DNA of 64,000 bases, taken from assembly GCA_047495785.1 (NCBI GenBank), contig JBLDXI010000019.1, positions 1,054,001 through 1,118,000 of the forward strand, written 5' to 3'. Made by a program: the position numbers and the translations under genes. Source of the stretch: Lepidodermella squamata (lineage: Eukaryota > Animalia > Gastrotricha). Of this stretch, positions 43,754 through 58,113 are shown piece by piece (positions within the stretch are counted from its first letter, which is position 1; every line of letters begins with the position of its first letter). The notes under the pieces are model-generated. The model saw only the letters and a program-made list of their open reading frames with translations. It searched no databases and was not told where the DNA came from.

Positions 43754-45913
43754 TCATCGCTCATCGCCGTACAGTTTGCTAAGACCGCCGAAAAACACTA
43801 CAACGTTGTCGAGATCCGAGTCGAGTTTGCTGCTGACTGACTGGCAGAAAAATTCAGGCGCAGAGTAACGCATCGAGTATAAGTTGTCCAACATTTGCCC
43901 GTTATACCGCGCAAATCTCTCGGAATACGCGCCTAGGCCTATTTCCAGCAACCACTTTTGCACGTCTTCACATGTCATTTTGAGAACTTGACGGGAGTTG
44001 CGTTTAATCGGAACACGACTTGCTAATTCAGCTAATTCTATTCTAGCGTTTTGTTTCAATTTCGAAGAAGATTCCGGTGAAGCAACAGAATCGTCCGTGC
44101 TATCGTTTGAAATCCGTCTCGAAACATTTGACTTGATCGGCGGAAGTTTTTTCTTCTTCTTCATCAATAGCGGAGGAGTTTTGGGTGTTTTAATAGCCAA
44201 CTCTGATAGAAGAATTTCGTCACGTGATGGCGAGTCATCTTGAGGTAGATTTAACATGTCCACAGGGTGGTGATCCGGGCTTTCTCGAGGGCGGCTAGGT
44301 GCTAGAATAATTTCCTCCTCTTCCTCAGCTACGATGATAGGGGAGGGCGCCGATGGCTTTTGGTCACGCGGTAGCATTTTCCGAATATTCGGGTCATTGC
44401 ACTCCTCGGCGAAACGTCGCGCCCTAGCTAGGTCTCCGATTTTTTCGAGTAAAACTCGCATAGCTGACTTGTTGTCACCGAATTTTTTGTAAATAGCGAA
44501 AGCTTCTTCGTACAGGTCATGGCTTTCGGCCATATCAGCAACATCCGCGCCGTCATAGCCGCCCAGGCGCATAGCGTAGTCCATTACTCGACTGTCAGCG
44601 TTGCTGGAACCAGCCATTTTTATAGCAGTAAGAAGCAGCAAATTTTTCAGCGATCTACTATCCAATTTCAACTCAAGTAATAAATGTTCTAAAATGGCGA
44701 GCAAATCCGACGAAAGGCTTGCGCTCATCATCGATTTCACCAGACAGCTCAACGCATCTTGATCAGACTGCGGGCCATTAGCAATCGCGGAAACTTCGTC
44801 GATAAATAATTGATCGGTCGAAATGCCTGAGGTTAGCAAGCTAGACCAGATGTGCGAATTTTTGAGCCTCAGCGCATATTGAAATCGTTCTTTCAAACGC
44901 TCCTCAGCTTCGCACTGCTGGATTATCTCGCGATCTATGTTGAGATCTTGCAAAGACTCGACTATTTCGCGCTTATGAAAATTTTCGCCAAATAAATCGA
45001 CAACAAGTTTAGCGATTGTTGTTCGATCGACCTTCTCAACAGAGCTAAGGGCCTGAAGACATTGAACTGCATCGTTTAGCTTCAATTCTCGCAGGTAACT
45101 AAGAATCCAATCATAATCAGTTTCAAGCAGCTTTGATCCGAGGTCGGATCCGAATAGCCTCTTTTTATCACCAATCGATTGGTAATTTTTCAATGCGAGC
45201 TTAGGGTAGCCGTGTTTTTCGCACAATTGAGCGATTTTCTTTGCATCATAATGCGTAAATTTGTTAGATTCTAAAACTGAAACAGCATCTTCCGATTTGT
45301 ATGAGAAGCAGACCTCGAAAAACTTGGTTTGAAGAGCACCATCACTTTCCTTATCCGATTGGAGAATTTCTTTCAAAAATTCCACGCAATGCTCAAGCAG
45401 GTTAGACTTCACGAAAACGTCGACAATCGCCGTTGAGCTTACAACAAATTTGCCTTTTTCACTATTAATCGACGCTAGTTTGCTGGCAAGTTTAACACCC
45501 TGCTCGATAGTCTCGCCACTGAGAATTGACTGAAGCAGATACAAATAATCCTCCTCTTTATACCCGATGGACAGCGAATGGTGAACAATTTTATCGAACT
45601 GACCGGACTCGGCGTAGGTGCGAATAATTTTGTGGGGCGCCTGAGCTCGTAAATAAATTGCCAGAGCTAATTCGCCGTCAAACGGCCGAACAGCATCGCC
45701 CATCTCCTCGGTGCACGCCAGTTTCCCAGGTTCGCCCAGCCATCGTCGCACTAAATCATTTTGGCCTTTTTGTAGGGCTAAAACACAGGCATCGATCGAT
45801 TCGCGAGTATTCAATGGATCAGTTCTCTAAAACAAAGCATAAAATCAGCAATCAATTCATGGCTGAATAATTAATCAGTTCACCTCCAGTAGATATTCGA
45901 AATTTGTCGGCAT
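43754..45913 (-). CDS. Chimeric clathrin-heavy-chain-repeat plus SAM-like protein (~700 aa)
   Basis: Exon 45913-45884, intron 45883-45827. CHC motifs CTEEMGDAV..LALAIYLRA, FTHYDAKKIAQLCEK, LKNLLLLTAIK, LYEEAFAIYKKF, IGDLARARRFAEECN. C-terminal SAM-like domain paralogous to that of the neighbouring gene. Confidence 0.85.
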
Positions 45914-52763: not shown

Positions 52764-52970
52764 TTCTAAATTGCGAAATAATAGCTCCCTTGTACATCTG
52801 CTGTTAGAGGCCACTCTCACCTCATAACATGACATTCCGAGTGTTGCGTTCTTTCAGCGCAGCAAGTTTCCAATCTTGTCATTTTTTAGTTGCGAAGCCG
52901 CGTCGCGCATAAAGTCTTTGGAGCGTTTATAACCTTGTCTCAATTTATTTTAGATCAATTTTAATCAATA

Positions 52971-54614
52971 ATGTTTGGTGCTAATACTACTTTCAATTTT
53001 GGCGCTCCGAAGACGAGTGCCCCAGCTGCACCCAGTGCCTTTTCGTTTGGCACGACTACAGCAACCCCTGCTGCTCCTGCTCCCACTTCGGCATTTAGTT
53101 TTGGCCAACCATCCGCGCCTGCCGCTCCTGCGTTTGGAACTAGTGGTTCAGCATTTTCGTTTCCAACACCAGGTGCTACGAACCAGCCAGCCCAACAAGC
53201 GCCTGGTCCTTTCGGCGCGTTCGGTACTCCTAACCAACAACCAGCTGCTCAGGCCCCGTCATCTGGTTTCAGCTTTAGCCAACCTGCTCAGCCTGCTCAG
53301 AATATGGTATTTCAACAGCAGCAACAACAGCAGAATGCCCAGCAAATGGCCGCCCAAAATGCAGCACAGTCCGGTGCCATCATTTACCAGGCGGTCACAA
53401 AACCGCAAATCTACGGTGATGACCGCGATCAGATAATTGCGAGTTGGAACGGCGTTCAAGCCGCCTGGGGCAAAGGTCGCTGTTTTGCGGGGCAGAATAT
53501 GTTTGTGGAAATTCAGCCGAATGACGAATGGTCCATTTTCAAATCCGTCCGCTACATTGAAATCCCGAGCTACAAGTAAGAAATATTGCGACCTTTCGAT
53601 TGAAACTTATTTTTGCTATTTAGAAACGATGATGGTGTCGTCTGTTTGAAGCTATCCAAATCGAAAAGCGAAGTTTTGAACATGCAGAAGCAGTTTTGCG
53701 ACACTTTGCACCGTATTTTGGGCGGCCAGCCGACCACCCAGGTCGTTATTGATGGAATCAGCGTTGCTAATCAGTCCAGCGGAGGCCCTACTGCTGCTGA
53801 TAAGGCCGGCAGTGCTGCGCCAAAAGTTGAATGTCACGTCATGCTACATGTGATTAATAGCATGAACCACGTACCTGCGTCTGATTTATTCCAGTTTTTA
53901 CAATCGCCGAATATTGCGAACCAGCTCGCCTCTCAATTGGCTGTCGTTGATATCAGCTCTTTAGCTGCCCCGACCAGGGAGGAACGCGATTATTACGCGT
54001 CTCACCCTCCTTCCGGCATTGCGCCGTTAATTTGGCTGCAAGCCCACCGCGACAACCCGGATCCGGATCGGTTGTTGCCAGCCCCGGTTGTCGGGTTTCC
54101 TGACCTTTTGGTTTGGGCTAATGAGCAGCAAGTTAGCATGGCTGCTCAGCGAGATGTCGTCACTTCGTTGACGCATCGCCAGGAGGAAGCGCTTGGTAGG
54201 GCTCGACAACAGGCGCAGAGGGTGGATGAATTGCGGCAACGAATTGGTGCGGTCAGTCACCGCCTCCTCAACGCAGCCGTCCGACTTGAAATCGCTGATC
54301 GTGGCGCGGCGCCTTTGACAAACGAAGAGTACGCAATGAGGTCATTCCTCGAGCAAATCGACGTTAATGTCCAGCAGCTGAATCAACGCCTTTCCGAATT
54401 TTCTGATCGTCTTTCGTTGCAAAGTGTTGCCCCGCAACAAAAAACTGGCTCTGGGGCGGAACGTTTACCGCCATCTTTTGTCGCTGATGTCACTGATCAG
54501 CTGCGGAATCAAATGAAAGCGACTGAGAAATTGGTTGCGATTCTTAAGGAGGATCTGTCTACTGTTAATTCGATTGATCGCTCGGTCGTTGCTCAAGAGA
54601 ATATTAGTCCTTGA
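52971..54614 (+). CDS. NUP54: Nucleoporin Nup54
   Basis: FG-rich N-terminus, IYGDDRDQII..WN.VQAAWGKG, W.QAHRDNPDPDRLLPAPVVGF, coiled coil. One intron at about 53576-53623. Confidence 0.9.
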
Positions 54615-54727
54615 TCGTTTTCTCAATTTTTTTCTCGGTGAATTTTCTTTTGCGGAAATTTGACATTTGCTATTACACCGGTTTCAAAGAAATTTCGTTT
54701 CTATTTTTAGGCATATTTAACTGAAAA

Positions 54728-55030
54728 ATGAGCAAACAAGGCGCTAATATTAAAATGCACGTCGAATACTGCGGCAAATGAGGTTACGCCCCTCGCTTCC
54801 AGGATCTCAAGAAGCAAATTCTTGCCGAGTATCCGGAGGCGAGTATTTCCGGCGACGTGGGTCGCCGGACTTCTTTCGAAGTCACACTGAACGACAAGCT
54901 TATCTTCTCCAAGCTGGAAAAGGGCGGCTTTCCCGATTTCAAGGAAGTCATTGCCCAGGTTGCCAAAGTCGCGTCTGGCGAGGAGCCGGGGCAGGTCGTC
55001 AAATCGCACAGTGAATGCTCACTGATGTAA
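54728..55030 (+). CDS. Selenoprotein, MIEN1/SelW2-like paralog A (100 aa, CGKU, C-terminal CSLM)
   Basis: In-frame TGA at 54779 in HVEYCGKUGY. Rdx motif SFEV..NDKLIFSKLEKGGFP. No intron in the CDS. SECIS downstream. Confidence 0.93.
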
Positions 55031-55102
55031 TTTCGCGACAGCTCGGAATCAAGACATGAGTATCAAAGCGATGGGCTGAACTAATTGGAACATGCGAGTT
55101 GA

Positions 55103-55173
55103 GCTGACGCTTGTGACGTTACTTTCGAAAATGCTCGTTTGAGCACCGAATGTGGCCGATGTGTGCGTCCGGC
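55103..55173 (+). promoter_or_regulatory. SECIS element (type II, GUGA core) of paralog A
   Basis: gacgc tt GTGAC gttactttcg AAAA tgctc-gttt-gagca c cgaatgtggc CGAT gtgt gcgtc. Confidence 0.9.
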
Positions 55174-55487
55174 TTGATTCGCTGTTCTGTTAGGTCGCCC
55201 GTATGCTACATTGTGACTTCATTGTTTTAGTTATTAGATGATAATTGATCTGTTGCTTTTGATAGAAATCTGAAATGCTCTATATTATGTCCATCTTGAA
55301 CAAAATCTGAATCTATGCTTTGAAAACCTAAGTCCCATTTGCAATAGTTTACACGAGATATATTTTACACATGGAAATATTTTGTTGGCAGTAATAATTT
55401 ACGTCGCAAGTAAATATTGTTTTGATTAAAAAAAATCCGCTATTATTGTTGCCTTTTTAGCTAGTTTTAGTCACTTTTATTTTAACT

Positions 55488-55795
55488 ATGAGTGACGGCG
55501 GGAGGAACATCAACGTTTTTATTGAATACTGGTGAGTTATAAATTTGTGATAATGTAATTATGTTCATTTTGGATTACTTTCAGTGATGCATGAGGCTAC
55601 TCATCGCGCTACAACGGCCTTCGTGAGATGATTCTTGAAATCCTCCCTAATGCTACAATTTCGGGATCCGAGGGTCGATACGGCGCTTTCGAAGTCTCGG
55701 TTAATGGTCAACTGATCTACTCTAAACTTGAAACTCGCCGTTTTCCCAAAGACAACCAGTTAGTTGACCAAATCGAGGCCATTGCGAGCCAATAA
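55488..55795 (+). CDS. Selenoprotein, MIEN1/SelW2-like paralog B (84 aa, CDAU, no CaaX)
   Basis: Intron 55532-55584 splits the Cys codon. TGA at 55592. GAFEVSVNGQLIYSKLETRRFP. Confidence 0.9.
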
Positions 55796-55830
55796 TATTT
55801 TCAACGCTTCGAATCGCAAAATGCAGTTAG

Positions 55831-55895
55831 AGCTTTTGATGACGCGACTTTCGGAAATGTCAGCAGGCAACGATTGCCGCCGATTTTATTAAGCT
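55831..55895 (+). promoter_or_regulatory. SECIS element (type II, AUGA core) of paralog B
   Basis: agctt..ATGAC gcgactttcg GAAA tgtc-agca-ggca a cgattgccgc CGAT..aagct. Helix II has three mismatches. Confidence 0.75.
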
Positions 55896-56069
55896 AGAAC
55901 TACGATTTGCGTTCGAAACAATGAGTGCTGTGCTAGTCAAATCATGACCTCCCTTCAGGTGCTTCCGTTATTTTGCCGACCAAATACTCATTTGATACGC
56001 TTTTTTACTCCTGAGAATTTAAAAAAAGAATAACTTGATAATATTTTTAATTGATTTTAGAGCTTTGAT

Positions 56070-56383
56070 ATGAATATGACTGGAGGAAAAAATCTTAAAA
56101 TTCACGTCGAATATTGGTTAGTAGCTAGCAAAATTTTCTAGTGATTATTTTTATATTTTGTCATCTTAATAGTAATGGGTGAGGGTACTATGCTCGATTC
56201 AGCACTCTCAAGTACGCGGTCATGCATGCTCTACCTGAGGCCACCGTCACCGGCCATATTGGGCGAGGCGGCGCTTTCGAAGTTTCAGTCAACGATAATC
56301 TTATTTTCTCGAAATTCGGCAGCGGTTTCTTCCCCAATAACCAGGAACTTATAGAGCAGATGAAAAAGATCGCCAGAAAATAG
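56070..56383 (+). CDS. Selenoprotein, MIEN1/SelW2-like paralog C (85 aa, CNGU, no CaaX)
   Basis: Intron 56117-56172 splits the Cys codon. TGA at 56180. GAFEVSVNDNLIFSKFGSGFFP. Confidence 0.9.
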
Positions 56384-56423
56384 CACTTCTAGTATTTCTC
56401 GTAGTCTTCGTGGCTAAATTTTC

Positions 56424-56483
56424 TGTGATGACGTGGTTTTTGCAAAGGCTTGAATCAAAAGCACCGAAAACTGCCGATGACAT
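56424..56483 (+). promoter_or_regulatory. SECIS element (type II, AUGA core) of paralog C
   Basis: ATGAC gtggtttttg cAAA ..gctt/aagc.. cgaaaactgc CGAT. Helix II pairs 10/10 including G-U. Confidence 0.85.
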
Positions 56484-56733
56484 TAAGGTGGATGAAGCTA
56501 CGAAGCAAAAAATATAGTTTTTTCCAATTCGGAGCTGCATGATTCGTTTGTAGCAAAGATCTCACCCTTTCATATCTTTCATATCAATCAAAAATTTTGC
56601 ACCTTTCATCTGAGAAGCAATATAGTCGAGCAATGTGATACTTGTTACTGGTTCTTCCTTTTATCGTGATTAAATTTTGTCTCACGTTTGTTTAATTTGA
56701 TTTTTATTGATTGTAGAGTGTTTAACTGCTAAA

Positions 56734-57135
56734 ATGAGCCAAAAGGGTGAAGTCACTGTCAACATCGAATATTGGTATTCTATTTAGCCATTTAATTGAA
56801 CATTTTTGATAGATTTTTCTCTCTCAGTGGTGCCTGAGGTTACGACTCTCGCTTTGAGGACCTGCGGGACGCGATTCTCGCTGCTGTCCCCAAGGTATTG
56901 ATGAATTTTGATTTTTATAAATTAACGTAATTGATTTTTCAAGGCGAGAGTAGCCGGCTTTGTTGGTCGGTCTTCGTCGTTCGAAGTCACCGTCAACGGC
57001 AAGGTGATCTTTTCCAAGCTCAAGCAGGGCGGTTTTCCCGTCTATGACAGCGTCTGCAAACAAGTCGCTGCCGCTGCTGAGGGCGAATTGCCGGGCGAAG
57101 TAACCGAAACGACTTGGAGTTGCACGATTCTGTAA
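56734..57135 (+). CDS. Selenoprotein, MIEN1/SelW2-like paralog D (99 aa, CGAU, C-terminal CTIL)
   Basis: Introns 56775-56827 and 56895-56943. TGA at 56835. SFEVTVNGKVIFSKLKQGGFP. Confidence 0.92.
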
Positions 57136-57198
57136 ATCCAAGCTGCTGAGCAGATGCTTTGAGTCGCGATTTCTTGCTTGATGTGCCGCGTTTTCGTC

Positions 57199-57266
57199 TC
57201 CCACTGTGTGACGAGCTACCTTAAAGTTCTCTAGAACACCGGTAGATTCCGAAGTTAGGGGTGGGC
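57199..57266 (+). promoter_or_regulatory. SECIS element (type II, GUGA core) of paralog D
   Basis: cccac..GTGAC gagctacc ttAAA gttc-tcta-gaac acc ggtagattc CGAA..gtggg. Confidence 0.8.
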
Positions 57267-57363
57267 GGAGGAACTCGTGTTATTTCTGGCCGGGATTAGT
57301 GACTTGGCTCTGTCGAATAAACTAAATTATTGATCAAAATTTAATTTTGTTTAGATTTTAATT

Positions 57364-58113
57364 ATGGAGGGTGAAGCGCCTAATTTGAAAAAATTCGTCT
57401 CGGAGAAGGACGTGGAAGAAGCGCGTAAAAAGCGCCAGGAGGAGTGGGAGAAAGCGCGTCAATCTCGACCGAACTTGCCGAACCCGGAAGATGCCGAAGC
57501 CGCGGCTGCTAGTGGTAAAACGCTGTACGAACAACTTCACCAGCAGAAAATGGCCAAGGATGAGGAGTTCGCCGAGGCTCGAAAGTTCAAAAACATGATT
57601 CGAGGCCTAGATGACGAAGAATCAGCGTATTTAGACCAAGTTTCGCGTAAACAGCTCGATGCTGAGCGACAGCGCCTGAAGGAACAGGAGGAACTGATCA
57701 ACGAATTGAGAAAGCAACAAACCGTTGCTCCACCTGTCGAACCGGTTAAAAAAGAAACGAGTGACAAACCGAAGCTGCCACCGCCTCCGAATTCTATTTC
57801 CTCCCTGGTGAAACAGGCCGTGAAGAGAAAAGCGCCTGATTCAAACGAACCAGAGAAGGACGAAAAATGCAACCATCACCCGATCGTTCGAGTTGTCGGC
57901 GTTTTGCCGTCGATTGTTTCCGCCTATGCTGATTCTGACCAGGAACAGTCAGACAGCAGCGATTCTGACAATTCTTCGGATTCTTCGGATTGCGATGTTA
58001 CCTGCAGTGGCAAGGCTGGTACTGGTGATGATTTAGCCTCATTCCGCCCGTCAGTCACGCCCGCGTTGATGCGACGACTGCGTCGCGAGTTGCAGGGCCA
58101 TGATGACGAATAG
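57364..58113 (+). CDS. PSME3IP1: PSME3-interacting protein (FAM192A/NIP30)
   Basis: KKFVSEKDVEEARKKRQEEWEK, TLYEQL, KFKNMIRGLDDEE, VVGVLP. Confidence 0.88.
   Translation: MEGEAPNLKKFVSEKDVEEARKKRQEEWEKARQSRPNLPNPEDAEAAAASGKTLYEQLHQQKMAKDEEFAEARKFKNMIRGLDDEESAYLDQVSRKQLDAERQRLKEQEELINELRKQQTVAPPVEPVKKETSDKPKLPPPPNSISSLVKQAVKRKAPDSNEPEKDEKCNHHPIVRVVGVLPSIVSAYADSDQEQSDSSDSDNSSDSSDCDVTCSGKAGTGDDLASFRPSVTPALMRRLRRELQGHDDE

Follow-up and report, generated by a model that had tools for sequence, protein, structure and literature searches.

In Lepidodermella squamata, four small genes with an in-frame TGA codon lie head to tail between Nup54 and FAM192A. They fall within the window analyzed here, a 64,000-nucleotide stretch of DNA from whose first letter the positions below are counted. 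The arrangement raises the questions of whether all four genes encode selenoproteins and why so many copies have been kept side by side.

Four UGA-containing genes and their SECIS elements

The four Rdx-family genes, designated g1 to g4, occupy positions 54728-57135 of the + strand, with Nup54 (52952-54614, +) upstream and FAM192A/PSME3IP1 (57364-58113, +) downstream; an SmE-like LSM gene lies immediately 5' of Nup54. After removal of GT..AG introns of 49 to 56 nt, the frames of g1, g2, g3 and g4 have 100, 84, 85 and 99 codons, respectively (proteins of as many aa), and the sole internal stop in each is a TGA within EYC-x-x-U-GY. The first gene, g1 (54728-55030, +), is intronless and has the motif CGKU (TGA, 54779-54781) and a C-terminal CaaX box, CSLM. 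The two middle genes, g2 (55488-55795, +; exons 55488-55531 and 55585-55795; CDAU with TGA at 55592-55594) and g3 (56070-56383, +; exons 56070-56116 and 56173-56383; CNGU with TGA at 56180-56182), are without a CaaX box, and g4 (56734-57135, +; exons 56734-56774, 56828-56894 and 56944-57135; CGAU with TGA at 56835-56837) ends in the CaaX box CTIL. A phase-2 intron lies within the Cys codon of g2, g3 and g4, and g4 has another intron. Pairwise identity among the four copies is 40 to 51%. The initial annotation had proposed four tandem + strand genes with a TGA at CxxU, and these are indeed present, in otherwise open frames.

Scored alone, the post-UGA pieces of all four genes exceeded the gathering score of the Pfam Rdx family (PF10262), reaching 31.6 to 53.7 bits (44 to 52 bits for g2 and g3) against a cut-off of 22.6, in agreement with the intact Rdx-family body annotated after the TGA. 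The top PDB match of every copy was MIEN1 (2ljk; E values from 1e-10 to 8e-8), as the MIEN1/SelW2-type identity originally assigned would predict. SELENOW1 (PDB 2npb), which shares the Pfam family and CxxU, was matched far more weakly by g1 (E 0.03) and g4 (E 0.65), and no match to it was obtained for g2 and g3 in the solved-structure search. The nearest Atlas clusters of the array copies are named MIEN1 family (score 0.91). By PDB ranks and Atlas clusters, rather than by a tree with named SELENOW1 sequences, g1 to g4 are all closer to MIEN1 than to SELENOW1, and on sequence grounds they are of the SELENOW2/MIEN1 type. Since the invertebrate members of this group have been assigned to the SELENOW2 branch (PMC13134290), SELENOW2 is the right name for them. 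Human MIEN1 (C17orf37, Rdx12; PDB 2ljk), the closest solved structure, has a CaaX box with a terminal Leu, as does g4, but it is a vertebrate-derived duplicate with Cys in place of selenocysteine (Sec) and without a SECIS. When the array proteins were aligned with U replaced by C, the TGA fell into the identical column in all seven copies from two species (see below) and in three outside transcripts.

Each 3' untranslated region (UTR) contains one type II SECIS hairpin (RUGAN, helix II, AA(A), mini-stem and NGAN), located 44 to 83 nt past the stop codon on the + strand. The g1 element (55098-55178) has the core GUGAC at 55113 and CGAU at 55160, the g2 element (55834-55890) AUGAC at 55839 and CGAU at 55884, the g3 element (56423-56484) AUGAC at 56428 and CGAU at 56478, and the g4 element (57195-57268) GUGAC at 57208 and CGAA at 57253. 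Helix II is paired at 9 of 10 positions in g1, 7 of 10 in g2 and 10 of 10 in g3; in g4, whose helix II is bulged as in its counterpart r3 from a related species, 8 of 9 positions pair if a one-base bulge is allowed. With thresholds set afterwards, the SECIS pattern found the four array elements and only three more sites in the remaining ∼125 kb (both strands), and shuffled UTRs matched it in 3 to 20 of 1,000 trials (0.3 to 2%; thresholds chosen with the elements known). Across seven elements from the two species, 79.6% of cells were paired and 9 of 14 pairs had changed on both sides, a covariation score reached by none of 500 shuffles.

No match was obtained with the Rfam SECIS models at either gathering or E-value thresholds. 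The folding-energy z-score was significant for g1 alone (-3.4) among g1 to g4 and weak for five of the seven hairpins from both species, as expected for SECIS cores with their non-standard pairs. A model built from the hairpins of the array and the relative recovered, weakly, the 3' UTR hairpins of two unrelated SELENOW2 transcripts, L003 (E 0.003) and L002 (E 0.03). The SECIS-like hairpin of L003 (399-449) is without the usual AA motif at the position given by the model. The UGA and the SECIS are found on the same RNA contig for g1, g2 and g4. The claim that each gene has a SECIS of its own is thus upheld by one covarying type II hairpin per gene that performs better than shuffled sequence.

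An operon-like run with a spliced leader

Two sequencing runs, X2 and X3, were recognized as RNA-like not from their records but from the splice joints they contain, together with A tails and adaptors from the library. All four predicted introns (one each in g2 and g3, two in g4) are joined in the contigs of these runs, bearing out the junctions predicted initially. The joints of g2 and of both g4 introns appear in X2 and X3 and that of g3 in X3 only; none of the g2 to g4 joints was seen in the DNA run. In Nup54 (52971-54614), two ORFs are separated by a 48-nt intron (53576-53623), whose joint is present in both RNA runs.

A non-genomic leader ending in TTTGTGTCTA precedes the acceptor AG of Nup54 (52952), g1 (54709) and g4 (56715). 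It is 22 to 24 nt long on these genes, with an 8-nt remnant on g2 (55459), and a sequence scan did not find it encoded in the window; no leader was seen on g3 or FAM192A in the X2/X3 contigs. At the g1 acceptor (54709-54710, +), 24 nt of leader are joined in an X2 contig of 535 nt, which consists exactly of leader and positions 54709-55219. The g2 contig (486 nt) comprises exactly the leader remnant, both exons and the SECIS, and the g4 contig (564 nt) runs from 22 nt of leader, joined in X2 at 56715-56716 (+), through the exons to the poly(A) tail. For g3, the RNA consists only of a read-through splice form and a 3' UTR contig, with little X2 coverage of the coding sequence (CDS).

Poly(A) sites are followed closely by acceptors along the run. 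The SmE-like gene is polyadenylated at 52932, 20 nt before the Nup54 leader acceptor. The g1 poly(A) site (∼55435, from an X3 A tail that sits at a genomic A run) precedes by 24 nt the g2 acceptor AG at 55459-55460 (+), where the leader remnant is joined in X2. The AATAAA and poly(A) site of g4 (57316-57339, +) end ∼15 nt 5' of an acceptor-like AG of FAM192A. A GT..AG stretch from the g2 3' UTR to the g3 acceptor AG at 56059-56060 (55959-56060, +) is spliced out in one X3 contig with 25 letters on its short side, so that an RNA spanning g2 and g3 exists. The donor of this joint lies 3' of the g2 SECIS, and the splice, seen in this single contig, would yield an RNA that covers two genes and contains two SECIS elements. 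Near exon 1 of g4, one X3 contig shows three opposite-strand joints (56674-56842) and is probably a library chimera.

These observations fit a spliced leader (SL) trans-spliced, operon-like run comprising SmE, Nup54, g1 to g4 and FAM192A. In the SL-resolved operons of nematodes and Oikopleura, too, a common leader is joined to an unpaired acceptor lying closely behind a poly(A) site. The run described here resembles them in this layout and differs in its leader; nothing relevant on this leader sequence or on gastrotrich trans-splicing was found in the literature. Trypanosome selenoprotein genes reportedly also have a poly(A) site and then an unpaired acceptor with a common leader. Most likely, the housekeeping genes and g1 to g4 are transcribed as one precursor, presumably from a single promoter; polyadenylation, followed 15 to 25 nt downstream by SL trans-splicing, would resolve this precursor into separate mRNAs for the individual genes. 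With each array mRNA separate, each copy would need, and so keep, its own SECIS, which would recode UGA to Sec via the standard SBP2/eEFSec route. The products would be small thioredoxin-like CxxU oxidoreductases.

Copies shared with a related species

Searching with FAM192A uncovered four contigs from metagenomes (L005 to L008) that belong to one related species, in which gene order is as in the window and the flanking proteins are mostly 63 to 83% identical. A Nup54 search gave the same relative again, and no obvious second relative emerged from the JGI metagenome search with FAM192A, where other matches were weak or short. Between window positions 43754 and 63903, ∼20 kb of gene order is kept in L008 (ACAD, LSM, Nup54, FAM192A, a DUF726/TMCO4-like gene, an ADAM-type protease and others); this region is intron-poor.

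Three UGA copies, each with a SECIS-like hairpin, lie between Nup54 and FAM192A in the relative: r1 (CGTU, intronless, CaaX box CVIM), r2 (GNGU, without CaaX; L005 5578-5838 and the same in L006 to L008) and r3 (CGAU, CaaX box CNIL). The gene finder called none of them, as anticipated by the initial annotation, according to which standard gene calling would miss such copies.

The copies g4 and r3 pair in the tree (support 94/95), share 62% identity and both have a bulged SECIS. The clade of g2, g3 and r2 is also well supported (100/97), on long branches. Grouping of g1 with r1 is compatible with the tree (AU p of 0.25) but not demanded by it, and their presumed orthology is drawn from position, intron loss and CaaX box. 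A clade of g1 to g4 alone was rejected (AU p = 0.0008). Together with the three UGA copies at the relative's locus, this overturns the proposal of a lineage-specific four-fold expansion and eliminates a recent species-specific one; judged from these sequences, at least three copy lineages are older than the split from the relative. The difference in copy number, four against three, may reflect either a split of g2 and g3 after the species split or the loss of a copy in the relative. An intron interrupting the Cys codon was present ancestrally and has disappeared from g1, r1 and r2. Two Cys homologs that group near the array copies, P0216 and P0157, come from other genomes with different neighbors and inform only the ancestry of this intron.

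Downstream of the UGA, pS is saturated in all pairs (0.64 to 0.84) compared with a pN of 0.25 to 0.54, which indicates purifying selection and confirms the constraint after the TGA that had been suggested. Among the coding variants listed, g1 has three, all synonymous, and the haplotypes of the relative have six synonymous ones and one K-to-R change; the listed indels fall only outside CDS and SECIS. As the TGA is present in seven of seven copies, it is plausible that every copy has been under selection for its selenium chemistry.

CaaX tails and the retention of four copies

The operon setting and the CaaX differences are additions to what was initially annotated. A CaaX box is found in 18 of 24 full-length homologs, mostly with a terminal Leu, and is thus ancestral. 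In both species its last residue follows gene position: Met in g1 and r1, no box in the middle copies and Leu in g4 and r3. As a general rule, a terminal Met of the CaaX box favors farnesyl, and a terminal Leu geranylgeranyl. In human MIEN1, the CVIL box carries a geranylgeranyl group (PMC6738349). We thus predict that g1 (CSLM) is farnesylated, that g4 (CTIL) is geranylgeranylated like human MIEN1 and that g2 and g3 are soluble; both this prenylation and Sec insertion are inferred from sequence.

The order of Met, none and Leu common to both species is the best hint that the copies have been retained by working in different places. We favor, with a probability of about 0.7, an ancient tandem array in which all four SELENOW2 selenoprotein genes are functional, set in an operon-like housekeeping run and probably retained through division of location or substrates. 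On our best reading, it is location that was divided, rather than new chemistry that was gained.

It appears rather unlikely that the four are real but largely redundant selenoprotein genes, kept for dosage, with the CaaX losses representing tolerated drift. A place in the operon may give a new copy free expression, the two species differ in copy number, the g2/g3/r2 branches are long, and SELENOW2/MIEN1 duplicates arise repeatedly (PMC3316567, PMC13134290). Nevertheless, the copies predate the species split and are only about half identical, whereas repeats kept for dosage tend to resemble each other much more closely, and the anchor pattern has been held by position despite saturated synonymous distance.

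The failure to see a leader on g3, its sparse X2 coverage, the three mismatches in helix II of g2, and, in the relative, the loss of the first Cys from the middle copy and the AUGG core of the r3 SECIS would all suit decay or poor translation of g2 and/or g3, such that not every copy yields a selenoprotein. This is improbable, however, given that the g2 and g3 frames are intact, score well above the Pfam cut-off and have a pN far below pS, that helix II of g3 is perfect and that g2 is represented by a complete spliced contig with a leader remnant. Although the assembly may derive from amplified DNA (PMC11660948) and the DNA run may be its own source, an assembly or amplification artefact, or TGAs that are true stops in pseudogenes, is highly improbable and is refuted by synteny and constraint downstream of the UGA, the copies being only half identical, represented in two RNA data sets of earlier date and matched by three orthologous copies between the same neighbors on four metagenome contigs.

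SELENOW2 (SelW2), which forms the branch of SELENOW2/MIEN1 found in invertebrates and fish (PMC13134290, PMC3316567), has the same Rdx fold, CxxU, 3' SECIS and MIEN1-like C-terminal half as the array copies, and a CaaX box is present in most homologs; the array differs in its four tandem copies, two of them without CaaX, and in its SL trans-spliced run. Zebrafish has a tandem pair, SelW2a/SelW2b, Cyprinoidei and Salmonidae have three Sec-MIEN1 copies, and Schmidtea mediterranea has three SelW2 and three SelW1 (PMC3316567, PMC13134290, PMC3828610). These duplicates are likewise lineage-restricted and Sec retaining, and the zebrafish pair is also tandem, but the array has more tandem copies (in 2.5 kb), an operon context and an anchor pattern conserved by position. 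No comparable operon-embedded array with such a pattern was described in the literature searched.

The gene family, Sec recoding and SELENOW2/MIEN1 duplication are thus already known, which limits the surprise; what is new is that four copies stand in tandem, in an operon-like setting and with an anchor pattern that is conserved. The analysis brings to light four genes that escape standard annotation and provides early selenoproteome and trans-splicing data for Gastrotricha, a phylum for which we found no selenoprotein study or trans-splicing data in the literature searched. We know of no settled substrate for SELENOW2/MIEN1. Paralogs with a common redox motif and transcription unit but a different lipid anchor make location separable from chemistry.

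More tentatively, one operon may deliver SELENOW2 proteins of three kinds, one farnesylated, another geranylgeranylated and the third, in one or two copies, soluble, with the GxxU copy of the relative, which lacks the resolving Cys, and the relative's AUGG SECIS both working. If true, such a sub-functionalized set would be a natural experiment on SELENOW2/MIEN1 at membranes versus cytosol and on the extent to which a SECIS core may vary. In r2, the first Cys codon is GGT, and the UGA and a perfect SECIS remain; among the 32 homologs whose motif is readable, not one has Gly at this position. The r3 SECIS core (L005 6448-6494) is AUGGC, not AUGAN, in all four contigs; either this departure from the canonical core is tolerated or the element has been weakened by it, and a literature search on AUGG cores found nothing relevant. 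Helix II, bulge, AAA and mini-stem of r3 match those of g4, and a haplotype change leaves one pair as G-U.
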